Source: Klebsormidium nitens (lineage: Eukaryota; Plantae; Klebsormidiophyceae). Taken from it: DNA of 44,450 nucleotides. The notes under the pieces are model-generated. The model did not search any database. It saw only the letters and a program-made list of their open reading frames with translations, and had not been told where the DNA came from. The stretch covers positions 1 to 44,450 of the forward strand of contig DF237629.1 of the NCBI GenBank assembly GCA_000708835.1, written 5' to 3'. Positions 4,727 to 39,000 of the stretch are shown piece by piece (positions within the stretch are counted from its first letter, which is position 1; every line of letters begins with the position of its first letter). The translations under genes and the position numbers were made by a program.

Positions 4727-7700
4727 TCAATACACTCGCTCAAAGGTCGACACAGGTCTGAGGAAGGCTATGACAATCGTCAGATTATCTCCGCTTAGTC
4801 GATTTGTGATGGCTTCCGTAGCAAGTCGCTTTCCGACCAGGAATGGGTCCTTCACAGTGTCGTAGACAAAAGCGAGGGCCTCTTCGTTGCTGACGACGTC
4901 CCAAAGTCCGTCGCTGGCAATGATCTGCACGAACAAACAAACTCCGCCTTGAAATGGAGCACAAGGAAACCTTGACTGAGCGACGGACCGCACACGAGGG
5001 CAAAGGCTCCAAAGTTATTCAAACGACCTTCTGTTGTCAAATTGCATCAAGAGTTTGACCAACTACCGGGATGCATGAAGACGTTCAGAAGGCGCCAAGC
5101 GAGACGGACAAGATGTAACTGACAGAGACATAACGGTCGCGAAAACAGATAGCCGATACTTTGTTCACCCGTTTGCTTACCAGAAACTCGTCCTCTTCCG
5201 TGAGCTCAATTGCAGAGACCTCAGGGAAAGCGGTGACTGCGGGCTTCAGATCTCCGTCTCCGATGGACCGAGTCACCTGCGAGCGCTCCAAAGATTGACT
5301 TAAGCAAAATTGAGTTGGAAGGGCCCATCCTCATGACCAATCACGTCGCCCCTGGGCGGCTTTGTGAATTCGAACAATAAATCGTGGCTAGCGGAAAAGA
5401 TTATGGTGACCAGATTGCAATCTTCTTGTGCAGGATCTGTGATGGGAAGTAATTGCCGCGTAATCAGCTGACAGCGCCATTTCTCAGCCAGAATTCCTCA
5501 ATCATTGGACCTATTACGGTGGCAACCAAAGTTTTTGAGAATCAGGAATCAGCAGTGTTTACAAGTCGAACTTCGTCAGAGCAGGTTGCCACGTGATCTC
5601 GATGTGAACCATTTCGCCTTTCCAAGGGCGACCCGCCGCGGTTTTTTAATGCGCCCTCTTTGCCCACCTGAATCGCTGCCTGCCCAACCCGCCACGTGTC
5701 GACCCGCCATTCCACAATGCCTCCTGCAGCCTCAACTCGAGCTCGCTCCGTTGGATCCTCCGCGATGTGGTCCTATAAACGTGAAAAAGACGCGTTCAGA
5801 AAGGTCACAGCTTCTAACACACTTCGAAGAGGCAGGGAGTCTACGTTCTCTTTTGCGGCGACTAATCAGTATGTACTTTGCGACAAAGAGCAGAATTCGA
5901 TGTATAATCCTGAGTACGGGTGGTCTTTCATGGCTTTGCGGATTTACATGGAGGGCTCTGATATCCTCAGCCTTGACCCTTAATCGGATCGTCCTCACCA
6001 AGATGACGGAGCGTTGCAAGTTCACCAGCACACTCCAGTATACGCTCTGAAATTGCAATGTCAATAAAACCAAAGCAGGCTCTTCTTACTTTCGTAATCT
6101 GCACAGCCTTTCCGTTTCGACAGAGGACCGCTCTGCAGTCTCCCGCGTTTGCCACCACCAATTTGTCGTCGATCACGAGCGCGGCCACCGCAGTACAGCC
6201 GGGATGCCAATCCTTTCCGCCGCCTCGTCTCAGCACCCGGCGTGCGTCGACTTCTCTCCGAAACTGCTCGTCGGTCCGCGTAAAGGTTGCCACGAGAGCA
6301 TCTTCCGCACTGCAGAAAAAGGACCTTCGTTAAGCCAAAGCAAGGCAAGGCAAAACGTCAGAAGCAAGTGCGGATCGTAAATAGACGCGTAAACGGTCTG
6401 GATCTGTGGCCCTGACGTGCACAGAGCAAAGATGCACGTCTTGCACGAGACGTTCTTGATCTGTTTAGTAAGACTTGGCCAATCGAGCGGGGAGACGGCA
6501 TATTATTTCCGGTGTTTTCATCCAGGAGCAAGGAGTCTCTCAAAGAATGATCAATTGCACGGGCGAACTAGAACAGGGCAAAATTCAATGTATGAGAGGT
6601 TTAAGCAACCAAAAGTCGAGAAGGTCACGTCCCGCACCTTCGGCCCTCCTTCAAGCTCTTGTACACGTGGCGGGGAACGGCACTGGCAGCGAACTCCGCG
6701 GCTTCCGCACCTGTACGGACTCAAAAGAATTGAAATAGAATTGAGGCGATCGAGCATACTCTGACGAGCTGCGCCGCGAAGTGCTTTTTGGAGGTCCACG
6801 AATAGTTGTCACGTGGGCGGAGTCTTCAAACTGCGGGAAAGTGTCTGCGATTCAAAGCTTCAGTCCACATTTCCCGCACGAGTACACGTGGTGAACACCC
6901 ACGCATGAGAACGATAAAGCTAGGTAAATTCCGCCTTTCTTGAGCGCACGAGGCTGAAGTAGAATGAGCAGAATTTACTGACCACAAATAGTAGCATGCC
7001 GGAAACTTCAACAGTTCGGAGAAAAGCCTAGCCTACCCACCTCTATGACCATCGAAAATGCCAAACAGATGGACCCCGTCCAACCCCCCCAGGTCTTGCA
7101 TCGCCACATGCGTATCCTCCATCCGGTCTCGTGCGCCCTTGGTCTCAAACACGCCGCTCGCGACTGTGGGTCGATACCCTCGTTCCGTTCCGTCCTTCCG
7201 TTCCGTTTCCGCTGGCACCACCGCTGCGGATGCCAGCTCCTTCGTCCCCTCTCCCAACGAAACGCTCGCCTCAGCCGCCTGCCGCCAATCGGTCTGCTCG
7301 GTTCCTTTCACCCGCCCTTCCGCCCCCATTTCCGCGCCGGATTCTGCGGCCTGATTCCGTGCGAGCTCCGCTTTGAGAAAATCTAGCTCTTGGATGACTT
7401 CTTCCAACTCTGGTCGCTGGAGGGGGTCAGAGTGCCAGCAGCGCTCGATGATGGAAGCGAGGCCGGGCGGGGCTCTTGAGGCGGCGGTCATGAGCACGGG
7501 GCGCAGCTGGTCGACGGTGATCGCCGCTGCTAGTTGCTGTTCGCTGTAGTCCATCTCGAGAACAGTATGGCACTGCAGAGAAGGGAAAACGCCTGGTAAA
7601 TTGCCGTCTACTGGCCTGCGCTTCTGGCCTTAGGAGACGCTCGCTAGACCAAAGACCGATAGAACTTTGAGCTCGTACCTTAAAAAGGTCGTCGGCATAT

Positions 7701-10691: not shown

Positions 10692-13600
10692 ATGGCAAGC
10701 CCTTTCTTGTGCCTACGAGCTTGTCTGACGCGGGAGCTGGATGGCTTACCACGGTGGTTGCAGAGACTTCCCATCTTCTCTCCCATGCTTTTTCCGCGGG
10801 CGCCTCTGCACACAAAAGCAGGAAGCCAAGAAGCGCAGCAGCCCTTGGAACTTCTCACATTCTCTGAACCAAGTGACTTGAACGCCACTACGCACAATCA
10901 CACATCTCAGAACAATGCTGCTGGTGCCACCACCACTTGTCCAAGAGGGCTAGCCCAAAGGCCATATCATTCTTGGCATGTTGCAAGCTTACTCAATCAA
11001 GGCTGCTCTGATCTTCCCTTTCCTTCAAGCAGCGCTTTTTGCGCACCTGGAGCAAGGAAGTACTCAAGTGGGGCAGGTGAGGAGGTGGTGCGGAATGTGA
11101 ACCTGGTCCAACGCAGATGTCTTTCAGCAGGTATCTTAAGTGACTGGCGTGCACACAGACAACGCTTTATAGAAGCCTTTCACATCTTCTGATGAACCAA
11201 TTAACTTTTGTACTTGACCCGACTGCTGCGTCTTGCATCTGCCGTAAGTAACAACAGTCTGTAAAAAGTGCAACACCCAATTCTTGTCATCTGTGTCACT
11301 CATGCTGGACTTTTTCTCACTGTATGATCTTCACAGGGCTTTCGTCTTTGCCCATCAAGAGACGAGCCGACTTAATGTGGCTCCTGAACCAAGAGGTAAT
11401 ATTCATTCTCTGGGGCAGCATTCTGCACATGAAGACCAGAGACCAATTAGTAACCTGCTCCTAACATGCCAGTCTAGCATACTGCTTCTTCAAAAGCTGG
11501 GACAGCTTCTGGGATGCCTTTGTCAGGCCAAGTGGTTGTACTGCTTCATCCTGTGCTTTTTGATCGCTATTTGCGTTTATCAGGAAAAGGAAGGTCTACA
11601 CAGTTCTGGCCTAGACAGATGTCTAGTGATGGGCGGGGTTGATCATTGAGGAGTTTTCAGGTTGTGTTTAGAGCTTGTTTGGTGCTGCCGCAGAACGCCT
11701 CCCTTCAGTTCTGGTTGAGAACAGAAGAAGACATCAGCACTGATTCCATGGCAAGCGGCCTGCTCAAACCGTTAATAGCACTGCGGAAGGTGAGGCTCCT
11801 TTCCTTTCACATTGAGATAGTTCTTGTGAGGTACTTGTTTTGTCTGTATACTCTTCAGGTCTGCATGCTCAGTGCCTGTAAAGATTGTCCTTTTGGTTGT
11901 CTCTTTAAGGCTTGATAGACTGAGTCAAAGTTGTCTTTTCTTGCAGACACATAGTATCAGCAACTAACATCTATTGGTCCTGTTTAACCGAGAAAAAGGA
12001 AAGCCTTCGTATCATAATTCAGGAATGTGAACGAAACGGTCCCCTGCGTACTTTCTCATCTCTCAGGAGATAGCGGAGCTGCAAGCGATCCTTGATGATG
12101 CAAACGAAGATGAGGAGATGAAGAACGTCGCAGAAGAGGAGCTTGAAGGCCAGACTCAGGAGTTGGCTCGTGTCAAGGACGAGCTGATCGACCAACTCCT
12201 GCCACGAGACGAAGCAGACGATAGTGGGTGCATTCTAGAGGTGAGAGCAGGTAAGATGGGGGTCATGGTTGGAAGAACACGGCTTCGAAGTCACTGTCTC
12301 CTCCTCTTTAGATGTTTGGAACAATAGAAGTCATCTCCGTGTGGATGACGTAAGATGGATTTTGATTCAATAGAAACGGCAGCGAACCTAATTGTAATCT
12401 CAAAGCTGCATTCAGTGCATAATCACAATCTTGACATGTGCTGGAAAGTACAAGCAAAAGCGTCGAATGTGCTTTCTTGACGCATCTTCAGGGAACGTGT
12501 GATGACCAAGAAAAACTACTTTTGTCAGAACTACGATGCAAGCGTTGTTGAAATCTCACAGGACCGTCTGTCGAGTCTTTGACCTCTCGCTTGGAATAAG
12601 TTCCCTTTTTACACATCACTCAGCAAGATTTGCACACTGTTCCAACTCATGCAGAAAAACCAGACAGAGTTCACGACTGTCCTCGCAAGAGCTAGAACGA
12701 AGAAAACTGTTTCTTCCAGGCACTGGTGGCGACGAAGCTGCCCTGTTTGCGCTGGAAGTATTTGGCATGTACGAGAGTCTGGCCAGGGGCAAAGGCTGGA
12801 AGTTTGAGGTTGTGGACGTCAACAGCACAGAGCTCAAGGGCTGTAAGGTACAAGACTGCAAGTCTGGTTTGCGCTCACGTGCGACTCACGATCTTCGCTC
12901 AACTTTCGCCCTTTCTCAGAGCTCTATGCTAGGGCAAGGGAACTGCGATTTTTCGTTTCTCGAAAGTTTCTAAAAGCACTTGAGAGCTTTTCGATGTGGT
13001 TATCTGATTGTTGTCGTGTTCGACTCTTGGATCGTTTGGGCCGATTATTGGTCCCATTATGATCTCGAAAAATCGTTACTTTCGCTCAAAACAGGAAGCC
13101 AGCGCGGCCATAAGCGGGCGAGGTGCATATGGACGCTTCAAGTATGAAATTGGGGTACATCGAGTGCAGGTAAGCTGTCGCTCTCAACCTTTATATTGTC
13201 GTTCTAGTTGGCATCCTCAACCAGATTTCGATACGTAGGAGTGGCAGCAATCTCTACTTTTCAGAAGCAGACTGCTTCCGTGCTCACAAGACTGGCCTGC
13301 TTTCAGAGCAAACCTTTTTGACTCATTCACGAGCGCTTAAGACGACGCTAGCTTTTAGAATCCGTTCCGATCGAGACCGAGAAGTGACTTGGAACATCAT
13401 TTCTAACTTCACTCCGAGCAATTTTCTCCATAAGCAAGCGGTTGAATCAACAACAGTCCTTTCTAAAGAAGTTATAGAGTTTAGCTACACAGCCGCACCG
13501 ATCTCTCGACACCAGAAACCTCGTCGTAATGAACAGAGGTTGGATAGTCAGACCTTGGCCAACAGAAAGTGAAAACTGGAGGTATTCATACTTTCGCTCC

Positions 13601-16661: not shown

Positions 16662-19600
16662 TCAGTCACTTCTGATCGGCAGGCCGAGGTCAGCCTGTCC
16701 ACGAGGAGAGGCCACGGGGTCGGAGTCGGCAGCAGACGTCAGTGGTGCGCTCGGAGTGGCTACGTTAGGCGCTGGTACTGGTGCTTTGCTTCCATCAAGC
16801 TGCAGTCAGAAAACGGAATGTCCTAACCGGCAGCTTTGAAAGGGTGCAAGCAGAATTTGAGAAAAGCCAGTCTGACCGTTGTCTTTGCGTCCTGCTTGAG
16901 CCACAGGATATGGACTCCCGTGCACCGGGGGAAAATTATGACAGTTCCTGGTCGAAACTTTGCAGTGACCGCTCCCAGAGGTGTTCCAGAGACGAACCTC
17001 AACAGACCAACAACTTTGATTGAAGAGGGAACCCAAGAAAAACCTCGACGAAGTGATTCTTTCGTGGGTGCCAGATTGTCAGAGTACGAGGAAGCCAAGT
17101 TATCATCTTTGACTATGTATAAAGCCCCAGAGGTGGTTTCTTCGGCTTGCAGCACACACTGAGTAGACCCCAACGAGAAGCTCACCGCTGCGGGTGCGTC
17201 GAAGGGCTGGACTGCATCTCTGTCAACGGCTGCGCCTGGCAGCGGCGCGACTGAAACAACTTGGTTGACCTTGTTCCGTTCTGCACGCAAAACGTTTCGT
17301 ATCAGCGCATCATCGGAAGCAGCCCCGTCCGCGACCGGTTTTACTAAAAGCACAGGCAATCCGACAAGTGTTTCAAAGACTACTTGCGCTGCTCATAAAG
17401 GGCGGTATTGTTCCATCGGAGCCATCCGCCACCAACGTGCGAGTGTCTAAGCAGACAGATCTCATTTTGCGGCCTTCGTTTCACTTGCACTTGACTCTTA
17501 TATTGCAAGGAAGTCTGGCGGACGGCAGGTGCTTTAACGGGGCAATGGATTCCTCCAAAAGGCAAATGCGCATTCAATCAGCGAGGCTGAGGGGCACGCA
17601 CTTCGGCGGTGATGAACGAAGAATCCTGCCGCGACTGCGACGAGGAGAAGAAGGCCCCCGCCTCCAGCCGCGGCCGCGTAGATAACGATCCCCGCGCCGC
17701 TGGTGCTTCCCGCCTGTGCCGGTCTGACAGCCAGCATGAAGGCTTCGCTGTTGGACGAGCCAGCCGTGTCCGTTGCCGTGACAAGAATATACGTGGTTCC
17801 GCTCTGGCCGGGTGCTGGGTTCGCTTGAACGCCGTAGGCAGTGCCGTCAAAAGTGACGAGAACATTGCTGCTCGGGACGAGCGTGCTGTTCGACGCCGAT
17901 GCCGAAACGGACACGCCCAGCTTGCCCGACGTCGTGACCGTGAAGCTCTGCTTCGGCATCGGCTGCCCCTGGTCCACGGTGACGTCAGCCAAGGAGCCGA
18001 TCGCCGGGGGGACGGCGCTCCGCCGGTCGTGGATGACGTCACCTGGGGCCAGGGTGACGACCGCCACGTCGGCCGCGAGCGCCGCCTGCACCGCCAGGCC
18101 GCCCGCTCGGAGCTGCGCGTCCACGGCGCCGGACGCAACCGCGCTCCTGACGCTCTGCGCGAACGCGGCCGCGATCACGCTGACGTCAGCCGGCACGCCA
18201 CCTCGATCCCGACCGTGACCTGCGGGCCTGAGGCGGCGTCCAGGAGTCTCCGCCGGAACGAGGCTTGGAGAGGAACCCCGTCCAAAGATAGAAGCGCGAC
18301 GGATAGGACCGGCACACCGAGCGCGCGCGCGGTGCCAATGCGGAAGATGCTCTGCTTCTGCGCGGTGAAGGTCGCAGAGCTCTCCCCGGAGACGGAGAGG
18401 CTCGTTTGGACGCTCTGGGTTGACGCTGCGGAAATGAGCGGCATCGATTAGCTGAGACTGGAGCGTTGAACATCTTTGGGACCGGACGTGATCAAGGCAG
18501 GCAGCGGAACGGTTTGACAAGTTGAGAGAGAAACCCGAAAAAGTGCCCAGTCGCCAAACGCAGAAAGCTGCGCTCCAGCATTTCTGCTGTGTAGGAGGGA
18601 TCCCGAATCATCCCGTTGCATTGCAATGCTCACGCACGTCTACTCTGGCTTGACTTTTTGGTGTGACGTTTTGGAAAGAACCGCTTTTACTTCAGAACAC
18701 TAGGGAAACTGTCAAAGCATACCTGGCGGAAGTGTCGCAGTCGGTGTCGGTGTCGAGCTTGGTGCTGGCACTTTGGTTGAAACCGGCGGCTTAGCTGCGA
18801 GACAACCAGGCCGATTCGATTTTTTTCAAAAGATGACTCGAGTTCTTGATAAAAACGATTTGCAGACGGTAAGACCATCATACGATTTTCAAGCGTTCTT
18901 CAAGAAATATTGAGAGAGCAGAAGCTCGAAAAGCCTGAGCTTTAGGTGAGCTTTCAAGATCGAAAGAGGACGTGACGTGCAGACGAGGACCCTCCCTTAT
19001 GCCCATCTTGTCAAGCCTGACCGCTTGGCCAGACTTTTATCGGAGGCGACTAAAGAATCTGGATTCACCAAAGCAAGCCTCGCCAGCCAGAGGCTCATTT
19101 TGCGCTATCAGCAATAATGGAAAGGGTCGAGCCAGCCACGTTTGACGAAGGCGATGCAAGTACTTTGATTGTGATAAGAAATACAACGAGACCCAATTCT
19201 GGCATCAAGCAAAGCAGAGTTTCAACCTAGTTGTAGTCCTTCTGTCTGACTCAGCAAGCTTCGAGTGTAGAAAAGCTGTCGTATAAGCTGATTCCTTGAA
19301 GACTTACTTTGCGGAAGAGGCGGTAGAGACTGGAGTCGGGACAGGGCAGGAAAGGCAATAACAATCTGCAAATAGAAGCAAGGAAAGCCCAAGGCTTAGT
19401 GATGCAAGGCTTTGGTATTTAAATCCATTATTCGCACGCGACTCAGCGGTATTTCTTAGAAACAGCAAGTAAGACTAAAAGAACACATTGAAAGCATCTA
19501 TGCAAATGAAGTCATCCTAGAAGAAAGACGACCGATGCACAGATAGTTTTAATTCGATATTGATTGACTGACTGCCGACTCTGATTGTGACGAGAGAAGC

Positions 19601-22341: not shown

Positions 22342-22816
22342 NNNNNNNNNNNNNNNNNNNNNNNNNNNNNNNNNNNNNNNNNNNNNNNNNNNNNNNNNNN
22401 NNNNNNNNNNNNNNNNNNNNNNNNNNNNNNNNNNNNNNNNNNNNNNNNNNNNNNNNNNNNNNNNNNNNNNNNNNNNNNNNNNNNNNNNNNNNNNNNNNNN
22501 NNNNNNNNNNNNNNNNNNNNNNNNNNNNNNNNNNNNNNNNNNNNNNNNNNNNNNNNNNNNNNNNNNNNNNNNNNNNNNNNNNNNNNNNNNNNNNNNNNNN
22601 NNNNNNNNNNNNNNNNNNNNNNNNNNNNNNNNNNNNNNNNNNNNNNNNNNNNNNNNNNNNNNNNNNNNNNNNNNNNNNNNNNNNNNNNNNNNNNNNNNNN
22701 NNNNNNNNNNNNNNNNNNNNNNNNNNNNNNNNNNNNNNNNNNNNNNNNNNNNNNNNNNNNNNNNNNNNNNNNNNNNNNNNNNNNNNNNNNNNNNNNNNNN
22801 NNNNNNNNNNNNNNNT
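22342..22816. other. Assembly gap (475 N)
   Basis: Run of N from 22342 to 22816. Confidence 1.
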
Positions 22817-23200: not shown

Positions 23201-26200
23201 ATGGCATGCCATCGCTCGACTCGCAGCACGGCCCTACGTCCCCAATCGGCTTTCCTATTGGCAGTCTTGATCATCGTTCTGCAGATAAGCAGCGCGGCTG
23301 CTTTTAACGTCAGCTATTTGCAAGGCTGCCCAGAGTACAACAACGTCACGTCCCTTGACCTTTGGTTCAAGCAACTGGTCGGTCCCATTCCGCCCGAGAT
23401 AGGCAAATGTACCGCGCTTGTCAGTCTCAATCTCAGCGTGAACTTCGCCATCAGCGGCCAGATCCCGCCCGAGATTGGCCGCCTGAGCAACCTCAGGGTG
23501 CTCAAGTTGGCGTCATTGTCAAAGCTTGAAGGGCCCATTCCCCCCGAGCTGGGCAACCTGTCTCAGCTCGAGGAGCTAGACTTGTCGAGCATATACTCCC
23601 TATCAGGGCCTATCCCAACCGAGCTGTGCCAACTCTCAAACCTGCAGAAGTTGGCGCTGCCAAATACCAACCTTTCTGGGCCCATCCCCGATTGTTTGAG
23701 CAACCTGCCGCAGCTCAAGGAGTTGGATCTTAGCGGCGCGTGGGGACTCCATCGCTCTGGTCAAACGTTGGGGCTGGTTTCCCGCCTGACCAACCTGACC
23801 AGTCTGAAGCTGTCCAATGCCAGCATAGCGGGTCCTTTACTCACAGCCATTGCCAATCTGACTGCGCTGCAAAAGTTGGACATATCATCCAACAATTTAT
23901 CGTCGATATCCTCCGTCTCGGCTGTCCAACTTGGTCAACCTGAACCTGGGTTACAACAACCTCCAAGCTAAATTTCCGGTTTGTGTGGGCAACCTGTCTA
24001 GGTTGAGCTTATTAACGTTGTCGAAGAACCGGTTGTCGGGGCCTATTCCGAGAGCTTTAGCGTTGCTGCCAAACCTGACCTACCTGGATTTGAGATCAAA
24101 CCTGCTGTCTGGAACCATCCCTGCAGAATTCGGTCAGGCTAGAATGCTCTCGACACTAGACCTCACCAATAATAGGCTAACAGGCGCAATACCACCTGAG
24201 CTCAGTAATATCACGACTTTAACGTCCCTTGAGCTGTCCAACAACCAGCTTTCGGGTCCAGTTCCTGCGCTTGCCAACATGCCCATGCTTAGGCGTATGA
24301 AACTAGACTCCAACAATCTATCGGGCCTTATCCCACCTTTCGGAACCCTCTCAGGGCTCAACCTTCTCAACCTCAGCTCTAATCAGCTCTCAGGCATGAT
24401 CCCATCAGAGTTCAGCAAGCTTCGAAATTTGGGGTCGCTAGACCTTAGTTACAACAGTCTGCAGGGCCCTGTTACCCCCCTTACAAATTTTTCAAGGAGC
24501 GGACTATTGTATCTGCAGCACAACGAGTTGGAAGGACCAATCCCTCCCAATTTCTTTGTTGGCAAAGCCGGTGTAGACCTGTCGCACAACAGGTTCTCGG
24601 GCGCCATTCCTGCGGAGGTCGGGAAAATGTCCACAAAGTCGACCTTGGGTTTGCCTTATCTGCTCCTGGACTTGTCTTCCAATGACCTGTCCGGCAGTCC
24701 CCCACTAGAGCTCCAACAGCTCCCACTCCTCTCCCAGCTCAACCTTTCCAACAACAACCTTTCGGGCTCTTTCCGGATTGGCCCCTTTGTTCGGGACGGT
24801 ACCTTCTCCTTGCTCCTGGACTTCAGCAACAACGGCCCGTTGGCGATGCTCCCAGGAACCAACTTCAGCGGCCTGCAGATCGTCGCCCTCCCAAACCTGA
24901 CCTCCAGGGATCCCCCACTTATCGCCCCGGACCTGCGCCTTTTGCAACTTAGCGGCGCCGGGGCGACCAACGGAAATTTGGACCTGTCAATCGTCCCCGC
25001 GAGCTGCCCCTACGTGACGTACTCCCGTCCGGTTTCGCACATTACGTTTTGGGGCGCGTGTACGAGCTCCACGGGCTGTCTGGTGAACTTGGTGGGCACT
25101 GGGGCCAAGCTGAGCCGCAGCACGCGCAAGACGGTGTGCCTCAACCGCATCTCGGTCTTCCTGGAGGGGGATCCCCCAACTCTGCAGTTCCCGCTCGGGT
25201 CGCCCCTTTCTCCGTACCTGAACAACAGCCGCGGCCCCTACTTCTTCAACGACAGCCGGTTCATTGACAAGATCGACCTGGGCCCCGGGGGAGTGGCGTA
25301 CACCGGCGTCGGCTTTGCGCGTGTGCAGGCGGGGAACCTGTGCGGGAACCCGGAAGCCAAAACGGTGGTTGCCGTCGCGTATGGCGTCTTCTCCGGGCTC
25401 GTCCTCTTGAGCTCCCTCGGCTGGTGGATCGCCGCGCGGAGCGGGTTCCTCATGAAGACGGGCAGCTCTTCGGGGCAGAACTTCATTCTGACCCTAGCGT
25501 TGTACATGTGGGGCTTGGTCTCGGGGCTCCTGCCGTGGGCCGACCTGGCAACCGATATCGCGGTCGTGGCGGACATTTGGGGGGTCTGGTCGGCGTGGGT
25601 CGTTCTGGGCGCGATTCTGGCCCCGTATCTCATCAGTGCCGCCTGCATCGCGTGCGTCTGGTGGGTTGATCCGACGCCCAACTCGATCTGGAAGGTAAGC
25701 AATTCAGTGGCTTTTCACTTTAGGATTCACTACTCTTGCTTTGAAGACCACACCGAAAATCGGTACCGTTTCTCACGAGGTTCGACAAGAGTGCGTTTTC
25801 TGCAAGCCTGTATTGCACTCGTTTCCCGTCACTTCTCAGCGGCCCTCGTATGTCACAGGAAGGTCGGACCTCTATCTCTTTCCTTTCAGGTTGAAGTGGG
25901 TTTGATTTAGACGTCAAACGTAGTCAATTTGATCTTCCATGTCAGTGTGATATTGGTTGAATCAAGTACGATGGCAGGTAGATAAGGTCTGCTGTTTTAT
26001 CGAGGTCAGGAGAACCGCCAGCACGCCATGCAGCGTCAGTGAGCTTGCTTGCTTCACGGCCTCTAAGGTGGATAACAAGGAAGTTTCGTCGTCAAACATG
26101 CCTACTTGACGGCTGGCTACTGAGAGACCTAGTACCAAGATAGTAGAATGTGGTCAATCCTCAGTCAGCCGAGTCGGCTTGTCTGCACAAACCCCTGTGG

Positions 26201-27018
26201 ATCCTGCGTCATCACCCCATGGCCAATCACGTCAGCCGCACCTAGCCTGGAAAACCGGTTGTGTGCCCCCGGTATTTTGCCCCCTAAGTTTCCTGTGCTT
26301 TTTATCCGATCATTGACATACGGACCGTCCCATGATCATCATAATAAAACTGACTGAGATTGGAGGAGTTATAGAACGCTCGAATCGGTTCCCCGGTGTT
26401 GCTCTTGCTCTGTGGTCAAACCTGCGCTACCTAGGCACTCTCGTCTCAAATGAATGCCTAGCTAGGCCTGCTCGTGTCTGCCAGGCACGCTTCAAGTGGG
26501 TTTGGTTCGCTGACGTCACGGACGCCTACCCGCCCACGCCCCTGGGCAAACTCCCCGCCTGGAGGTACCCCCTGGCGCTCGCGTCTCTACCCGAGGCTGC
26601 CGCGGCCGTCGTCGTTTATGACGTCATCGGCTTTTTGGACAGAGTCGGGTTCCACCTCCGGTGGGGCGCTGACGTGTACACCCTGCGGCCCTACTCCGAC
26701 TTGCGCGCGCAGCTGGAGCTGATTCTGCGCTCCATTCCCCAGGCCCTTTTCCAGAGCGTCCTCTACCTGTTGGGCAGTTCGCGCTCCACGCGCATTTACA
26801 TCGACCAGCACACGTTCACACTCTCGATCGCGGTGTCTCTTCTGAGCATCCTGGTGCAGTTCAACCTGCTTCTGAAGGAGACCCTGGAGAGCAAGCTGCC
26901 CGTGGCGACGATAATGCGCAGGCGTTTCTTGGCCGCGAATTGCCGCCCGTGCCTGATGAAGAGCGCTGGCGAAGCGGGGGAGGAGTTCGAGAGTGTCAAC
27001 GAGAAGGTTGTCCCCTAG
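23201..27018 (+). CDS. Signal peptide + ~20 plant-type LRRs + Cys-containing juxtamembrane domain + multi-TM XK-related domain; frameshifted within the LRRs as assembled
   Basis: ATG at 23201 with hydrophobic leader AFLLAVLIIVLQISSAAA. Repeats of LxxLxLxxNxLSGxIP over about 23350-24850. Exon 1 ends WK|GTAAGC at 25694; exon 2 spans 26485-27018. TM part: ADLATDIAVV, LELILRSIPQALFQSVLY, SIAVSLLSI. The frame shifts from ORF 23138-23971 to ORF 23931-25910 at about 23905-23925. Confidence 0.85.
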
Positions 27019-28503: not shown

Positions 28504-31500
28504 TCAAGCTGCACCCCCAGAAACGCGCGCGTACACGACCACGTGGCTTTGAAGCTCCCGGTCCACTGGAAAGTGTGCGTGGAAGAAGCGGGGTCCCTGT
28601 GGGGGCGAAGTAGTGCTAATTCGTCATTTCTTTCTTGGAGGGGCCTCAGAGAATTTCAAAGAGTCTCCTGCCTTTTCTTGGGAGATGACTCATCCTGACA
28701 TGGAGCGGACGCTGATGCAGGGCGTTGGCTTAGGTATGGTTACGTTTGAGAAAGAGGAGCGGCACTGACCTTTAATCTGTGGTATAACGCAAAGGGTCCT
28801 GCTCCGATTATGTGGTCATCTCTGCCGTTGATTGTAAGTCTTTGCAGGATCTAAGCGCCGACCCGACAAAGCACGTCCTCTTGATCCCCAAACATCGAAA
28901 GGAACTGAAAGCCCCCCTTCCTCAGATCCAAGCCCGCCAAAAGTACAACGCCGATGATCCAGACCGTTTCGCTATTTCCGAGAGGTCGGAGATCAACGTG
29001 CGGTAACTTTCATCCTCGCACCCGCAACATAAATCCTTTCCGACAAGTCTTGCCAACACGCCCAGTATGTATGGCTGACTTTCCCATTTTTCTGGACGCA
29101 GAGGTCATGGTAACCGGGAGCTCGACACTAACCTTGGCAAAACCCTCCTGCGTCAGCAGATCCTCAACCCCCTTTTCCACGGGTTCAAAAAGGACGATAT
29201 GACTGGGCAGCTTTTCCGCGAGCCCCTCCGCAGCGGAGCCAATCAGCTGCTGCCACGTGGCTCTTCTGCGGTCGATCTCAGCGTGCTGGGACCCAGACCC
29301 GTTGTTGGACAGCAGTTCGAACTCCCGTGAAAGAAAGGCCGCCGGGTCGCGGAAGAAGCGGTCGTCCTCCCGCACGTGGCCCGGCTTAGAGCTGCGGTGT
29401 TGAGAGGAGTGACGTCAGCAGTGCAGAGCACCACTCAAGGATGACGGAGGCATCGTCATCAGAATGGACGACACCGAGGTAATTGAAAATTACAAAGCCT
29501 CGGAAGTAGATAAAAGACGTCGGCACTTCTCAGTGCTCCCTTCCTGTTCGACTGCTGATCACATGGAGGCCAACTTAGTACAGGTCTGCTTGTCAAGTGT
29601 CTGCCTAGACAGGTGACGGAGTGGGAGAGAGCCGAATCCAAAACCACTTCGACTACAGGGCATTCCAACAAACGAAGCTACTTCAAATTTTAGGAAGCTT
29701 ACAGAAAGAATCTCGAATTTTAGAAGTAAACAGGCAGTGTAGATGACAGAAGACCTAAAACACGCAAACGACTGATCTCCTGCAAGCATATACGCTTGGA
29801 TTCTAAAAGAATCCGACCAGAGTTTCAGTCATCATCTTCGAAGATGATCCTTTACCTCGGCGCACAGTCCAGGATCCGCATCGGAATCGGCGCGTGCACG
29901 TGGCTGTAGAACGGCGTCGAGTGGCACGGCATCAAGAGCCACACTGCTTGTACTTTGATTGTGAAGGATCAGCGAAGAGATGGTTTCAAATGAAACTCCT
30001 CAAACACGGCAGAAGAAACGCCCATGTACACATGGGCAGAGTCGCTTCAAACCTTTACCTGGGCGCGCACTCCAGAATCCGCATGGGCACGCGCGCATGC
30101 ACGTGGCTGTAGAACGGCGTAGAATGGCACGGCATGAGGAACCAAACCCCCGAAACCCCGCCCGCCCGCGCCTCGTCTGCCAGCCACTCGGCGACTCGCA
30201 CCGCGCCCCGTTGGTGAATCATCGAAAAGTAAAGCGCCATCGGAATTTGGGTAAGAATTAGGAACGCGAGCAACAGGCGCAGAGCGAGGGGCCGCGAGGA
30301 GGGTGTGACGTCAGCGGAGGGAGGTGTGACGTCAGCGGAAGGGGGTGAGACGTCAGCGGAGGGTTTGCCGAGACCGGAGGTGCCGACGGGAGAGAAGACG
30401 GCGGTGGTAGCGCCAGGGGAGCGTTTGGAGGGAGCGGGGGCGTTTCCGCAGGTGCTTGTGACGTCAGCGGAGAGCTTTGCGCCGACGGTGCCGGGCGGGG
30501 GTTTGGACTGGGTGACGTCAGCAGGGGTTTTGGAGGGGTTGACCGGCCGGCGCCTGTGCAAGGACGTTACGACTCGGGGGTTCGTTTGGAAGCGCGACGG
30601 GTCGTTGGAAGAGAGATCGGGTTCCGAGTTGGAGGGGTGCAAATCTCGTTCCGAGCTTCGGGGAGCTGAATCCCGTCCCGATTTGGAGGGTTGCAATTCC
30701 GTTTCCGGAAGCTCCGCATCAGGGCGGCCACCGGAACGACCGGGACTGTCCAAGCTTGCCAGCGCTTCGCCGGCGAAGGCCATTACAAGGGGCAGAATCG
30801 GAAGGATGAACCTGCTCAGGCACGGGGGCAGGTTGGAGAGATCGAATGCGGGGTTGCTCGGAAAGCGAGAACACGCGTGTAGCACAAGTTATAAACCAGC
30901 TACTACGTGACGCTGACCAGGAACGTGGGTGAAGGGGATGCTTCCTTCCGCAAGCAAACAACCAGAAAAGTTGGCCACAACAATGTTTCCGAATCATACC
31001 ATAAGAACGACGAAACGTGGATCAGCGAACGACCTGGCTGGGAGGCTTACTGAAGCCAACATCAGTTTCAGCAACGCTGACAGAGACATCGGTGCCCCAA
31101 GCTGCCCCAAACTCCATAATCTCTACTTGTTTTGTTAGTGAAACGGCAGCAGCTTGCTTGTCCTTACCACAGAGAGGACGGGCCACCCCCCCTTACAACA
31201 AAGTGAGCCCCGCTTTCCATCTAGACCTCGGTTCGGTTGGTGGTTGCAGGCTTAGCGGGTTTCAGATCCCTTCACAAATCTTCATCGGACTGGATTCAAG
31301 GTCCATTTTCATTCCTCTATCTTTACGACATAAGTTTGGAAGAGGAACACCGTACTTGGATGATTGTTAGGAAAGCTCCGCTTCGCCTCACCTGAGCTCC
31401 TTGTGTCCCAACAAGCTGTAAGCCGCCATAACCCAGACGATGACGCACGCAAGCGCTCCGTTCCGGCTCCGCCAGACGCCCACCATAGCGAACGGAAGGA

Positions 31501-34417
31501 GCGTCGTGGCCATCGCTGGGAGGCCACCCGTGAAGTACCTGCAACGATGCGCCGGCCATGACTTCGGCGACGGTCCTTCCCTTGAAAGCAGCGAGAAGGA
31601 AAGGGAAGGGTACGAGGTGTGCTCCAAACAAAGGCAGCCGCGCAGTGATAAGTCCTGCGAACGGTTTGCAGTGGTCGAAAAGATGAATCCGCTTCGAATG
31701 CGAGCACTGAGGACGCGTTGCGATCGTCTTGCGTTTTACTAACTGACTTTACAGAAGCAAAATAAAAAGAAGACAGAAGGACGCCACAGCGTCCACACTT
31801 GTGCCGGCTCGACGTTGGGTACGCTTCCAGAGACTTGCTTAGTTTCAAGTCTCGGGCCCAGATGACTATGGTCTTTTCAAACAAGACCGGATACGAAAGC
31901 TTATAACCGAACGGGTACTTCCAAGCTCTTCGCCTTCCAGCAACTATTTACGCTCAACCTTTCAAAAATCGGACCGATTCCATCTTGATACATACCTGCA
32001 GACGCAATTTGAGTGTGAAATGAACCGTACCAGTCTGTCACGCGTTGATCAAAAGTCAAAGACACCCTAGCAATCTTCAGTCGTAGCCACACCGAACCTT
32101 GCCTTACCAGTGCCAAGGGTGCGTTCCATAAGCGTCGGCGCCCCCACTAAGATTAAAGCAGACGAAGTTCAGCGGTACGATCGTCCACTCGCCGTACATC
32201 CAACGGTCCAGGAGCGTCGATGCGCCCAAGCAAACGAAGCTGCGTATGCCGACAGAAAAGCTCAGATTTCAGAGCTCCGATATTGGACTTGGCGGCCAAA
32301 TGGGTCGCCCTTTTTGAGATTGAGTTCAAGGCAGCTCGTTACTCAAAAAGTCGTGACCGAGAGCCCCTCAGACAATCATTGGACACATCTTTTCAATCAG
32401 ATGCTGAGTCGAAGACAAGCCATATGTCAGCCATGCGGGAGTTGCGTTCGACAAGCACCTGCGTCGAATGGAACCGGAAAGAGACGCCGACTCGACGAAG
32501 GTTCGAACAAAGCTCAAAAGGGAATTTGAACGGAATTCTGTCCCTCAAGAAACGACGACGTTCTGGAAGGCAAGGAATCCGAATCTAGAAACAGGCATTG
32601 CAGTTCTTCGAGCTTTGAACAAACGGGGAACACGGGAACAAAGCGAAGGAAGCCAATGAAGTGCGGCTCACCCTATCGGAAGGACTTCGAGGAACACAAA
32701 GCGCTTCTTGTCGGGCGTTCTGGCCAACTCCTGGAATCCCAAGTAGACCCAAAGGACAGCGCTCGTTGGCCGGAAAAGACATGCCAACCCGGCAAGAGAC
32801 AAGGCGAGGGGCCTATTCACACAAGCTCTGCTGGTCCCATACTTGCTGTCCGTTTCGCTGTCTGCGTATCCGTATGCAGTTTTGGAGGCCCTTCCGGTCT
32901 CTGTCTGAAGAAGTGAGTCATTCCTCTGCGGCTGGTTGTAAACTTTTGTGGGTTGCTTGGAGCTTGATGGGAATCCTTGTTCTGTTGCTTTCATTGGCAG
33001 AGGCTTGGTTTCGAGGGGCCAGTAGAAGAGGGCGGCGGTCGTGAGGACGGTCTCGAGGCAGTTCGAGAAGGGTCGGACGATGCAGAAGAACGTGAACCAG
33101 TTGAGCAGCTGGCACACCAGCTGAAGACGCGGTGTCAAGGAAAGCAGTTACGAGAACAGCCTTAGCCAACTGACACTGAAACTTCTAATGGCTCTTCTGA
33201 AGAAAGTGAGCAGCTCATTGGATGAAGAGAAGGGTTGGCAGATGTGTCAAGCGAGCGGTTTCGAATTGAGATTAGACAGACGCTTGGCAAACGTGGGCCA
33301 CAAAGCAGTTCTTAATGAAATAAGGCCAACAGTGAAAGTTTGAAAATCTGTTGTGACAAGTAAGAGGATACGGCCCATTTGGCGGCCTTCTGGGAGAAAA
33401 TGCGCCCCGTCAGCTTGTACAGAAATGAATCTCCGACAGCTGCGAGTGCACCTTGGAGGAGTCTGGGTGCAATCCTCTGCAGAAAAACATAAGCGATGGT
33501 GTGCTTATGGACATACACTATCGGCTGAACTTCTCAAAACACGTTCTAGTCTCCTGGCGAGTATCCCAGAGTGTTCCCTTCCAGCAAGTGTTGGATAAAG
33601 AAACACACCCCAGCCCAAAGTCGTGGATGTGAGCGAATCAAAGCAAGCCTGGACTGATTTACGGCTCTTACAAACAAAACCAAGGGGGCATGCTTCTTGC
33701 ATATGCTTTCAACGCCATTTGCATCAGAAGGGGGCTCAAGACCGCAGTTGAGGTGAGCTGTAACCACATGACCACCACCGTACCCCATTAGCATTTAACC
33801 ATTTTGGTGTCCGGCAAAAGGCTGCTTGGACCAGCGCACCTACCAACGCTGCTGCAGAGTCGCAGCCACAGAGAGCGAGGGCCTTGTACAGCGCAGCAAA
33901 GATGAGCGGGTGGGCATAGCTGCGGATGCCTTCACGCCACTCCCAGGTTATATATCCATACCTGAAATCAAGACCAGATATGCGTTCAAGTCAAAATTCC
34001 AAGCCTTTCTGTTTCAACTCAGAGCAGACAAAGTGGCATAGTCCGCCCATTCCCTGATCCCAGTGTGTACTGAACAGATCAACTGGCTCCCGGTTGTGCT
34101 GAGACAAGCGCCAAGAAGAGTACAAGCAAGTCCTGGGAACTGAATTGATTGTGTTGTTGGGTGTGATCAGCTAGAACCTGGGTTTTGTAGCTAAGACACA
34201 AAGTCCAATGTTCCCTCCCAGCTCCGTCAAGCAGGGCTGGGGCAGCTTGCAATCTACGGTTTGCAACTTACCTGAATACAAGCCGATGCGCCACTTCCAA
34301 GCTCTGCCAATACTCATCTGGATTGAAGTATGTTTGCACCAAAAGGGCATTGAGGAGGCGGAAGATGAGCAAGCTAGCCAGCAGCACTCGATGATCTTCC
34401 GAGCGCAGACACACCAT
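28504..34417 (-). CDS. PIGB: GPI mannosyltransferase 3 (PIG-B / GPI10, glycosyltransferase family 22)
   Basis: Exons (minus): <=34417-34272, 33961-33844, 33476-33372, 33120-32672, 32239-32108, 31538-31392, 30811-30059, 29391-29133, 28596-28504, phases consistent. Motifs: [92 protein letters not shown]. Start codon uncertain. Confidence 0.95.
29856..29944 (-). repeat. Diverged intronic copy of the 3' 89 nt of PIG-B exon 7 including its donor site
   Basis: Encodes [29 protein letters not shown] versus the exon's [29 protein letters not shown] (30147-30059). Both end AG|GTAAAGG; period 203 bp. Confidence 0.95.
30302..30364. repeat. 3 x 21-bp tandem repeat (PSADV[S/T]P) within the PIG-B low-complexity insertion
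   Basis: ggtgtgacgtcagcggaggga / ggtgtgacgtcagcggaaggg / ggtgagacgtcagcggagggt. Confidence 0.95.
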
Positions 34418-35662: not shown

Positions 35663-36029
35663 CTAGCTCTGATCTGAGATCAGTCAACAGCGGACCTGAG
35701 GCGACAGGAAGTGGCCTCCAGAATCATGCCTTGAAAGCTGCTGCTGACTTTTGATGGGCACTAGAAGCAGGGAGAGCATCAGGTTCCGATTGGATCAGAA
35801 GTTAGAACCCATAACAAGTCAATTGCAAAACCCCTCCGCTGTTGTAAAGCCATCGAAGCTGGTCCTACGATGTGGAGCAGATCAAGTTGCTCCCATATGT
35901 TGAACTAGACATAGGAGTCTGCCGTTCAGCGCATCTCTTTCAGTTCCCTTCTACCACAGGGTCATGTTGAAACCGGGCTGAAACCGGGCTAGTCAGCCTC
36001 TAACCCAGAGTGGTTAAGGGCCATCATTG

Positions 36030-39000
36030 ATGGCAGTCTCCAGCTGGCGATGGCTCAACGAGAGCCGTTGGATCGGCCTCGCTGCCGCCGTCTATGCGGA
36101 GGCCTGCGGTGGCCTGGCATACACGTTTGCCGTCTACTCCGACCACCTCAAGGAAACCCTGGGTTACACCCAAACCCAAATCGACGCGCTCGGGTCAAGC
36201 AAGGACTTCGGCGGGAACACGGGGGTCATCTCTGGGTTGATGTACAACCTGTTCCCGCCGTGGGTGTCGGTTTTCATCGGGGGAACGTGTAATCTTTTCG
36301 GGTATCTGGCGCTTTGGATGACGAGTAAGCAGTGGATAGCGCCGCCGTATTGGCTCGTGTGTTTGTCAATCATGGTGGGGGCGAATGGGGAGACGTGGGT
36401 TGGGACGGCGGTTATGGTGACCAGCATGCAGACTTTTCCAAATGAGCGGGGCGTTGTGATCGGGCTGCTCAAGGCATATATTGGGATTAGCGGGGCCATG
36501 TTTGCGAGGGTGAGTCCGACAAGACATATTGAGTCTCTAGCAGACTAGCAGAAATGCTGTCCAGCAGTCTACAGTAGAATACAAACGCTTCTGCGGGAAC
36601 CTACTTCCGGATTCTTTCGTAGATTGTGACGAAACTGGATCCCTTTTTCAACTCAAGAAACTTTGTGCTGAAAGTTGCCAAGTTACACAGGGGTTTTCCA
36701 AACTTTCTGTATCCAAATCGTGGGCTGATGCTTTTCAGAGTGCTCGGTTGAGGCTTGCTTCTGCCTGATTGATAACATGGGTTCCAGCTTTGGTCACGGG
36801 CGTTCTTCTCTGTGGTTTTAGTAGCCTCTAGTTCTGTAGAGCGTACGTCATGTGTTTGACATCCGGAATCACACGTTAGTGCTGCTGTCATCTGAAACCT
36901 GAACCCATTTATTGCCCATCTCCAGGTGTACAAGAGCTTCTTCGAGCCGCACGCGAGCGCCTACATCCTCATGCAAGCGGTTGCGCCGTTCGCCGTCTCC
37001 GCCTCCGTAATGTTCTTCATCAAGCAGTATCCTGTCCTGAGGGACGCTGACGTCAGCGAGACCGCACGACGGTTCCGGTGGTCGTACTACATCGTGGTGG
37101 TCCTGGCGGTGTATCTGATGCTGATCACGATTGTGGAGAGCGTTGCGGAAGTGGGTCAGGCCTGGGGGTCAACACTAACCGGGGTCATGATGGCGGTGTT
37201 GCTGCTGCCAGCTGCAATACCGGTGAGAATGACGAGCTTTGTCTTGGGAGTTCGAAGCATCCCGTTGGGCACCAGCAAGCTTTCCGTTTCATCATGACGG
37301 TGTTCTTCAAACCCAATCAAGTTCGTAAGGGGGCTGCTGAGAGGCTGGGTGAATCCCGTTACACCTGTGCCTGGCTGGGGCAATCGCTTTACAGAGCAGT
37401 CTCCGTACTGGGCTCGCAAGGTTCATTCGCAGCCTTCAGAAAACCTACTGAGTTTCAGAGATGCTTTCAGTTGAAAAAAACCCGCGCTCGAATCCATCAC
37501 AGCCTGATTCGCTAATGGAAAAGGTTATAGACTTTCTTCCAGAAAGTCTATTACCTCGGTGGGGTCGATGCCAGGTAACGTCACCAAACAAAGACGTTTC
37601 TTATGCATCAACGGACTCGCCTGAACATACGCTCCGCCGCCTGGTTCACCCCATCATTGGCCATTTCACAGACAAGCTTGGTGCGAAGTTCGAGAGTTTT
37701 GACATTCCGAAATAGGAACAAGCGTTGGTTTTGTTCGATTATGAAACTTGAACCCTCCGTTCTGCAGTTCGTGGGAGGTTCCGAGTACCGGCGCCTGTCC
37801 GATGCGGACGAGGAGCAGGTGTCCGGCGGAGAAGAGCCGACGCTCGCGCTCGAAAAGTTCGTCCGAGTGGTGCCCCCGGAGTACACGCTCGCGGAGAGCC
37901 TGCGGACGATAGACTACTGGTAAGGCACTCACGGCTCTTCTCAGTTTGTCTGCCGATTGACATTCGCTCGTCGCTTCTGTACAAGGTTTGAGATTCTGTA
38001 CAATTGTTGCAAACGCCCTTTGAAGATCTGCGGTTGCTCGATTCGGGATCCGTGTCAGATAAACCGTGGATGCTGCATGCTTGGTGGTGACGACAATCCT
38101 CTTCGCTACGGGGATCTGTAGTGCTGGTTTGTCTTCATTGCCCGGTCGCCGTGTCGTGCAATCAGACATGTGGCATCTAAATCGAGAAGTCAGCCATCTT
38201 CGTGGCTGATTGAACATGCCGAACCACCAAAAAATGATTGGGCTTGGCAACCTGGTTCCTGTCGAACCCTTGTTGTGGTCCTCGCAAGTTTCTCTTCTTT
38301 GCAGTGGCGGCCGATACAGGGAGCGGGCTGACGATCATCAATAACAACAATTTTTGTTGCCCTCATCAACCTCTTCATAGCTGCGTTGGAAACCAGACCA
38401 TACACCCAAAAAAGGGCTTCTGCTTCTGTCAAACCCGTGCTCTCATCTCCGCAGGTTGCTCTTCTTTGCGGTCGCGGCGGGAACGGGGAGCGGGCTGACG
38501 ATCATCAACAACCTGGCACAGATTGGGAAGGCACTCGACACCAAGAGCATCTCGTCCTTTGTGTCACTCGTCAGCATCTGGAACTGCGCGGGGCGGCTGC
38601 TGGCGGGGTGAGCGATGCACGTTTGTTTTGTCCCACGGATTCAAATCTTGACTTTTAGACGTTAAGGTGGGCCGTCGGCCCAAATGGCAGCGCCGCAGCG
38701 GCGCGAGGGATGCATTTGAGTTGAGCGGCGCAAGCTGACGCTCGGTTCGCGGCTTAACGATTCGTTGCGCCGTCCTCTTGCTTCTTGCGACTTGAAAGTG
38801 AGTGCAAATTCAACTGGCCCCATAGGGACCTTGATTGGAAGGTTGCGACCTTGGGTCAGCTAGAAGCCCTTTCAGGACTCCCAGTACAATACTCATCATT
38901 TGAACTACTGACTTTGTCCTACTTCTTGACGTCAGGTATACGTCCGAGTGGTGCGTCAAGGCCGGGTATCCCCGGACGTTGATGCTAGTGGGAGTTATCG

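Follow-up and report, generated by a model that had tools for sequence, protein, structure and literature searches.

A leucine-rich repeat ectodomain joined to a half-XK-like six-helix membrane part in Klebsormidium nitens: an undescribed receptor-like architecture

Here, we used computational analysis to follow up a single gene on a 44,450-nt stretch of DNA from the alga Klebsormidium nitens (contig DF237629.1 of assembly GCA_000708835.1; hereafter, the window), which is eukaryotic DNA with a G+C content of ~52%. The gene, which occupies positions 23201 to 27018 of the + strand, joins a leucine-rich repeat (LRR) ectodomain to a six-helix membrane part that resembles half of an XK-related protein. 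This is an undescribed receptor-like architecture, and a full-text literature search on Klebsormidium LRR and transmembrane (TM) proteins, and on XK-related proteins in algae or together with LRRs, returned no description of the family. A secreted array of about 20 LRRs, a Cys-containing juxtamembrane domain, a membrane-crossing helix (TM0) and a compact five-helix module lie on one polypeptide. The protein is neither a receptor-like kinase (RLK) nor a receptor-like protein (RLP), since it has no kinase and is not single pass, and it is not a bona fide member of the XK-related Pfam family PF09815. Taken as a whole, the locus would be a member, with one frameshift, of a green-algal family of LRR-bearing type I proteins whose module is a single-repeat relative of XK proteins that acts on lipids after ligand binding; we give this composite reading about an even chance.

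As in LRR-RLPs and LRR-RLKs, a signal peptide precedes an extracellular array of plant-type LRRs. The ATG at 23201 opens a sequence that reads as a typical signal peptide, and by eye we counted some 20 to 21 repeats of 22 to 25 residues each, in keeping with a first-pass annotation of the DNA that had noted both the signal peptide and ~20 plant-type LRRs. Both pieces of the array gave strong Pfam matches (LRR_1, E=1e-26; LRR_8, E=8e-25; LRR_14, E=1e-15), and N-glycosylation sequons are numerous. The repeats are followed by a non-LRR region that had been put at ~120 residues and said to end in GNLCGNP; it does end in this motif, measures ~130 residues and contains five cysteines (residues 603, 621, 627, 647 and 715). 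This region is conserved among paralogues P0001 to P0022 (…SCPYVTY…FW.AC…GC.VNL.GTG..LSR.TR..VCL.RISVFL…GVGF.RVQ.GNLCGNP), the G, N, L and C of the terminal motif are invariant in 12 paralogues, and in most distant relatives the alignment begins at the Cys of that motif. It may represent an undescribed extracellular domain.

Where an RLP would have a single TM helix and a short tail, and an RLK a kinase, the gene encodes six hydrophobic, helical segments after GNLCGNP, namely, TM0 and the five helices of the module. A Pfam scan of the gene pieces found no Pkinase match and no other domain beyond the LRRs, so that the earlier description of six hydrophobic segments in place of one TM helix plus a kinase holds, and the motifs quoted in it (WADLATDIAVV, YSDLRAQLELILRSIPQALFQSVLY and TLSIAVSLLSI) are all present exactly. 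Two alignments of the module were used for modeling and searching, A1 with 12 sequences and A2 with 82. With A2, AlphaFold produced a confident model of P0001 (predicted local distance difference test [pLDDT], 89.2; predicted template modeling score [pTM], 0.85); with 12 sequences the model was weak (pLDDT, 68) and its Foldseek matches were noise. In the confident model, TM0 (residues 9 to 37) forms a bundle with helices 46-80, 85-111, a kinked helix (145-153/155-173), 188-216 and 228-256, with a small beta-hairpin after helix 85-111 and a second one after the kinked helix. The topology that we expect places the LRRs outside, with TM0 running inward and helix 1 running outward like alpha1 of XKR8; many paralogues carry a basic stretch after TM0. 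Helix 3 may correspond to the helix that is half-inserted in XK repeats (XKR8 alpha3 or XKR9 IH1) and, if it is indeed half-inserted, the C-terminal tail would be cytoplasmic.

The architecture is not peculiar to this locus. A query composed of the Cys domain and first helices matched 22 proteins, down to E=5e-121, among which the named ones are from K. nitens only and the others come from JGI or ENA samples. A search of 1.84 billion proteins with the A1 profile returned 140 representatives at E<=1e-3, 61 of them at E<=1e-10, and where a source is named, the module comes from K. nitens (13 genes or more), Botryococcus braunii, Trebouxia, Bryopsis and, in the case of a single protein, the foraminiferan Bolivina argentea. 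The module is preceded by LRRs in P0067, P0070, P0092, P0115 and P0143; it follows LRRs in Botryococcus and Bryopsis, and Trebouxia proteins carry the module too. The combination of LRRs and a polytopic membrane part that had been read from this one sequence is therefore real and recurs across a gene family. The B. argentea protein (P0102, 1877 aa) carries an EF-hand at its N terminus, along with ankyrin repeats and two module copies (~190-450 and 1068-1300), and a profile built without it and without P0142 scores the two at 86 and 55 bits, respectively, in a 1.8-billion-sequence space. The gene in the window carries the marks of the family, these being a GNLCGNP-type motif, TM0, a W-rich turn, the Pro and Asp of helix 3, the R…PQ..FQ..Y pattern and a GSSRATRIYID-type loop, and it shares its intron position with the family loci on K. 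nitens contig DF236957.1 (L001) and on a JGI contig (L002). Beyond the gene itself, we found no synteny with either of these loci, nor did we find a second family copy within the window. Database entries label the members as hypothetical or, misleadingly, as FLS2-like kinases, several of those from K. nitens being named FLS2. In one partial K. nitens protein (P0013, 905 aa), another LRR array follows a complete module; two tandem members, lying on a short contig, have probably been fused into a single gene model.

The proteins XKR8, XKR9 and XKR4 are scramblases, and XK partners with VPS13A; scramblases of the XK type are known as two-repeat animal proteins that are switched on by caspases, kinases or dimerization. 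In XKR8, eight helices are TM and two more go halfway (PMC8500837), and XKR9 consists of two related repeats, in each of which four TM helices are accompanied by one that is partly inserted (PMC8298096). The algal protein has five helices after TM0, and their order (two TM helices, a kinked helix and two TM helices) is that of one XK repeat. Judging from sequence comparison, the module is likely to be a distant single-repeat relative of XK proteins, even though it failed formal membership of the Pfam family. Four family members matched PF09815 (profile length, 337 positions; gathering score, 24.8 bits), namely, P0102 (residues 1060-1310; E=3.3e-5, 23.5 bits, profile positions 8-150), P0044 (E=3e-4, 20.3 bits, positions 3-174), P0142 (E=7.5e-4, 19.0 bits, positions 127-184) and the K. 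nitens protein P0042 (GAQ93027.1; E=1.7e-3, 17.8 bits, positions 4-190). All four are subthreshold (17.8 to 23.5 bits), and all fall in profile positions 3-190, which is the first XK repeat. Out of the 24,736 families of the Pfam library, PF09815 is the sole one to which two or more of the 82 A2 sequences match at E<0.09; two of the matching proteins, P0042 and P0044, are close to the protein encoded in the window (A1 profile, E=2e-44 and 1e-41). A small mixed profile, A7, run against PDB sequences gave two matches at E<=10, one of which was XKR4 (9boj_B; E=8, not significant). This alignment is collinear, with XKR4 …YFADVGTDVW… on the D..TD helix of the family and XKR4 LLATFLESAPQLVLQ…SLVSLAWALAS on the family's …LLLES.PQA.FQ…SI..SL.S. 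The claim that the membrane part corresponds to the N-terminal half of an XK protein is thus borne out by where the four matches lie and by the order of the XKR4 motifs, but none of the matches reaches the cutoff.

The polar residues of the module also invite comparison. Charged residues lie within membrane helices in both groups of proteins; in the algal family these are the D..TD of helix 1, an Asp in helix 3 and, in helix 4, an Arg followed by E…E/R, and helix 4 further contains the invariant residues R194, P205, Q206, F209, Q210 and Y214. In XKR8, residues D26 and D30 (alpha1), K/R134, E137 and E141 (alpha4) and R183 (alpha5) are each needed for scrambling, and Q145 lines the proposed lipid path (PMC8500837). 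The spacing of the algal D..TD (i, i+4) and E…E..PQ (i, i+4, i+8) is that of XKR8 D26/D30 and E137/E141/Q145, and the proposal that the module keeps intramembrane charges spaced like the scrambling residues of XKR8 (helix 1, D..TD; helix 4, R…E…E/R..PQ) is supported by the alignments, albeit at a subthreshold level. In this gene, the putative equivalents of the XKR8 acidic residues comprise D..TD and the first Glu, with Arg as the second, the equivalence being drawn from the weak XKR4 alignment and from spacing.

Two other explanations of the membrane part have to be weighed against this. One is that the gene model is an artifact, the LRR open reading frame (ORF) encoding a single-pass receptor-like protein and 26485-27018 belonging to a different gene; 790 nt do separate the parts, and prokaryote-style gene callers on metagenome contigs give two separate ORFs. 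However, helices 1 and 2 of the module already lie inside the LRR exon, which ends in …SIWK at a phase 0 junction (25694/26485, with GT at 25695 and AG at 26483-84). Both splice sites are kept in L001 and L002, where similarity is lost exactly at these points, and in K. nitens the annotated protein KFL_000080140 (P0001), which shares 75% identity with the query region, reads …ILK/ARFKWVWF across the same junction. In annotated proteins from K. nitens, Botryococcus, Trebouxia and Bryopsis, the whole module lies in one chain, and in the confident AlphaFold model helices from the two exons pack together as a single bundle (pTM, 0.85). Given that the helices of both exons form one bundle and that the GT-AG sites are kept in three loci, the last exon is not another gene but is very probably spliced to the LRR exon, as had been predicted, and we regard the artifact explanation as effectively refuted. 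The other explanation, which is unlikely in our judgment, is that the module represents a membrane fold confined to this lineage and without kinship to XK, that its D..TD and E…ES.PQ motifs resemble those of XK proteins by convergence or chance, and that the protein is an LRR receptor-like protein with a novel multipass anchor, channel or transporter part. A good deal of the evidence points this way and weighs against XK kinship. No family member reaches 24.8 bits with PF09815, and the four matches that fall short of it are not independent events, because the family members are interrelated. The subfamily of this gene is without any PF09815 match: even at E<=10, none was obtained with the pieces of this gene or with P0001, P0005, P0013 or P0011, so that the profile scan suggested in the first-pass annotation went against it for both this gene and its nearest relative. 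The suggested structural comparison fared no better. A Foldseek search of the PDB with the confident model (pLDDT, 89) gave a best E of 0.31 and TM scores of <=0.24, with no XKR protein among the 50 matches listed, and thus three-dimensional similarity to solved XKR structures was not found. The bestrophin, GPCR and similar matches were dismissed as noise (TM score, <=0.24; root mean square deviation, 14 to 27 Å). The XKR4 match came at E=8; phmmer and hmmsearch runs against the PDB with P0013, A1, A2, the Klebsormidium-only profile A8, P0102 and P0044 found no XKR protein, and searches from P0102 and alignment A3 for genuine XK proteins returned none. Moreover, the charged residues vary between subfamilies, as is evident from a split into subtypes at the helix 4 column encoded at 26728-26730 (E…E, E…R as in this gene, and distant members with H, N or Q and with PT for PQ) and from P0001, which has lost D..TD and reads TLASN. 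The Arg in place of the conserved Glu of ES.PQ, remarked on in the first-pass annotation, is confirmed, and it is found in P0001, P0005, P0007, P0016, P0027 and others as well as in this gene, both Glu residues being present in about half of the Klebsormidium paralogues. Since so many paralogues share it, we take this Arg to be a subfamily trait rather than decay, and it may mean a different activity. Set against all this, four members match the same 1 of 24,736 families, collinearly with its first half, and no other family recurs at E<0.09; two separate motifs align to XKR4 in the right order; and the number and order of helices fit one XK repeat. Foldseek, for its part, copes poorly with all-helical membrane proteins that match only in part, and the structural comparison is negative or, at most, uninformative. 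Distant kinship to a single XK repeat remains the reading that we prefer.

The state of this particular copy is a separate matter. The first-pass annotation overlooked a frameshift: reading frames 2 (23201-23920) and 0 (from 23922) meet inside one LRR, at ~23915-23923, and the gene is therefore broken as assembled, which counts against an intact receptor at this locus. A short intron was considered to explain the frame change and rejected, as no GT…AG interval has a fitting length and phase and any intron at this place would also cut an LRR core. At the frameshift, the gene lacks 83 nt relative to L001 and L002, or about one repeat plus 11 nt; compared with the shorter paralogue P0003, the difference is just 1 to 2 nt. 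If the indel in the LRR is real, the gene is dead: the product would end after ~240 residues and a short out-of-frame tail, and the membrane module would not be made here. We lean against this, although it is a serious possibility. The upstream frame reaches a stop at 23969-23971 after the frame change, the 83-nt shortfall is not a multiple of 3, and the family, with 13 or more members in K. nitens, could lose one copy cheaply. Yet the ~770 codons past the frameshift stay open across a conserved intron, and the ratio of nonsynonymous to synonymous substitution (dN/dS) against L002 gives no hint of relaxation, being 0.20 upstream of the frameshift, 0.21 downstream and 0.23 in exon 2. Likewise, this copy keeps 52 of the 54 module columns that are conserved at >=90%. 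The scaffold, too, is of draft quality, as seen from a 474-N gap at 22342-22815, 386 bp upstream of the ATG, which also leaves the promoter region incomplete. Finally, the LRR region of P0003, on an independent JGI contig (Ga0590114_0000849, L004:2940-3080), is itself split over two overlapping frames, with a break (…SGQTLEI / MSHLTNLATL…) near a CCC run that resembles a one-base indel; this points to indel errors in assembly or else to frequent decay in the LRR-module family. The frameshift in the window is either an assembly error or a recent mutation that makes the gene a very young pseudogene; several of these observations favor an error or a very young lesion.

Plant cell-surface LRR receptors are known to signal via kinases or kinase coreceptors. 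With LRR-RLPs and LRR-RLKs such as FLS2, the algal protein shares a signal peptide, 24-residue LRRs of the LxxLxLxxNxLSGxIP type, many sequons and a type I orientation. However, it has neither a kinase nor a short tail, it has six membrane helices instead of one, and its juxtamembrane Cys domain, ending in GNLCGNP, belongs to no Pfam family. It differs from XK-related proteins in having one five-helix repeat instead of two repeats, in its additional TM helix at the N terminus and its large ectodomain of LRRs, in the lack of a match to them above the Pfam cutoff or by Foldseek, in the Arg that replaces the second Glu in this subfamily and in a counterpart of R134 that is shifted by one residue. 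Moreover, no caspase-type regulatory tail is evident, and the hosts are green algae, not animals. In the complex of XKR8 with Basigin or Neuroplastin, the helix of a single-pass glycoprotein with an ectodomain packs on an XK-type bundle (PMC8500837). By analogy, the pairing of TM0 with the module in the AlphaFold model (pTM, 0.85) may represent a comparable arrangement within one algal chain. Basigin, however, is a separate chain with Ig domains that touches alpha9 of the second repeat, whereas the algal ectodomain is made of LRRs and covalently linked, and there is no second repeat. The nearest precedent of which we are aware is a passing remark that integrin-like proteins of the stramenopile Pirsonia have Pfam-annotated XK-related domains and several TM segments (PMC13524835). 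By that description, these proteins also combine a large adhesion or receptor ectodomain with an XK-related multipass domain in a protist, although their ectodomain is of the FG-GAP/EGF kind and the lineage is a different one.

The features of the gene are collected in Table 1.

Table 1. Features of the LRR-module gene, with positions in the 44,450-nt window
Feature	Position	Strand	Basis and remarks
Start codon and signal peptide	23201..23302	+	34 aa: basic n-region, hydrophobic core AFLLAVLIIVL, SSAAA end; hydropathy peak 2.45
LRR ectodomain part 1 (~8 repeats, frame 2)	23303..23920	+	Pfam LRR_14 1.2e-15, also LRR_4, LRR_8 and LRR_1; 69% identity to P0002
+1 frameshift within one LRR	23915..23923	+	ORF frames and sequence; junction …NNLSSISSVS / LSNLVNLNLGYNNL…
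LRR ectodomain part 2 (~12-13 repeats, final ones degenerate, frame 0)	23922..24965	+	Pfam LRR_1 1.2e-26, LRR_8 8e-25; 68% identity to P0002
Cys-containing juxtamembrane domain (~130 aa; GNLCGNP end at 25332-25352)	24966..25355	+	No Pfam family
TM0, membrane-crossing helix after the ectodomain	25356..25442	+	Hydropathy 1.98; helix 9-37 in AlphaFold model of the 75%-identical P0001, block pLDDT ~97-98
Module helix 1 with D..TD (WADLATDIAVV), then conserved W-rich turn	25470..25574	+	Family alignment, AlphaFold model; aligns to XKR4 DVGTD
Module helix 2 (WVVLGAILAPY…)	25587..25667	+	Hydropathy and AlphaFold model
Intron, 790 nt, phase 0, GTAAG…GCCAG	25695..26484	+	Donor and acceptor kept in three loci; P0001 uses the same junction
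Loop: conserved RFKWVWF beta-hairpin and Pro-rich stretch	26485..26556	+	Family alignment, AlphaFold model
Module helix 3, kink at invariant Pro, invariant Asp	26557..26643	+	Model helices 145-153 and 155-173; P156 and D166 invariant
Module helix 4, R…E…(E/R)S.PQ..FQ..LY; RAQLELILRSIPQALFQSVLY in this gene	26686..26772	+	Aligns to XKR4 LLATFLESAPQLVLQ and to PF09815 positions ~127-150
Near-invariant loop GSSR(A/S)TRIYID	26773..26805	+	Family alignment; Ser here where Ala is invariant
Module helix 5 (…SIAVSLLSILVQ…)	26806..26892	+	Family alignment, hydropathy, AlphaFold model
C-terminal tail, basic then acidic; TAG stop at 27016-27018	26893..27018	+	Homologues end at the same place

Elsewhere in the window, exons of a nodulin-like MFS protein (36027-36545, + strand; E=2e-50) and of a peptide chain release factor (PCRF; 12536-12970, + strand; E=2e-11) are ordinary housekeeping neighbors. 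Two exons on the - strand (30058-30885 and 32671-33138) encode an Alg9-like mannosyltransferase (Glyco_transf_22; E=6e-10 and 1e-16). Also on the - strand, an ORF at 7036-7554 weakly matches a protein kinase domain at the C-terminal end of that domain (E=1e-3) and continues into sequence that is PP2C-like by eye, and it may be an exon of a kinase-phosphatase fusion. A further - strand ORF (17537-18520) encodes 328 residues rich in Ala, Gly and Ser that end in a hydrophobic helix and a basic anchor and match no Pfam family; this may be an exon of a single-pass surface protein.

How might such a protein work? The LRR ectodomain would bind an extracellular ligand, and binding would alter the oligomeric state or the conformation of the membrane part. 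If the module is a single XK repeat, two chains probably must pair, and in doing so they would rebuild an XK-like body of ten helices. The hydrophilic path of XKR8 is formed by alpha1, alpha2, alpha4 and alpha5, all of the first repeat (PMC8500837), and a polar groove could therefore persist in a single repeat. Dimerization has been proposed as a step in the activation of XKR4 (PMC12334663). Given this proposal, and a single repeat being half of an XK body, the simplest model is one in which the ligand drives the pairing of two chains. The assembled module would then scramble membrane lipids or dock a lipid-transfer partner instead of signaling through a kinase; ligand-gated scrambling is a matter of pure inference. 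A bolder version, which strikes us as unlikely, is that the five-helix module is a free-standing XK repeat, ancestral to the two-repeat scramblases of animals, that LRR-ligand pairing assembles a scramblase and that the B. argentea protein, with its two module copies, is an intermediate. Were that so, the output of the receptor would be a change in membrane lipid asymmetry and not phosphorylation.

If the family does join LRRs to an XK-related module, it would provide streptophyte and chlorophyte algae with a nonkinase output for LRR sensing. It would also offer a natural half-XK protein in which to study the assembly of the XK fold and of its lipid path, and it would widen the evolutionary range of the XK superfamily.

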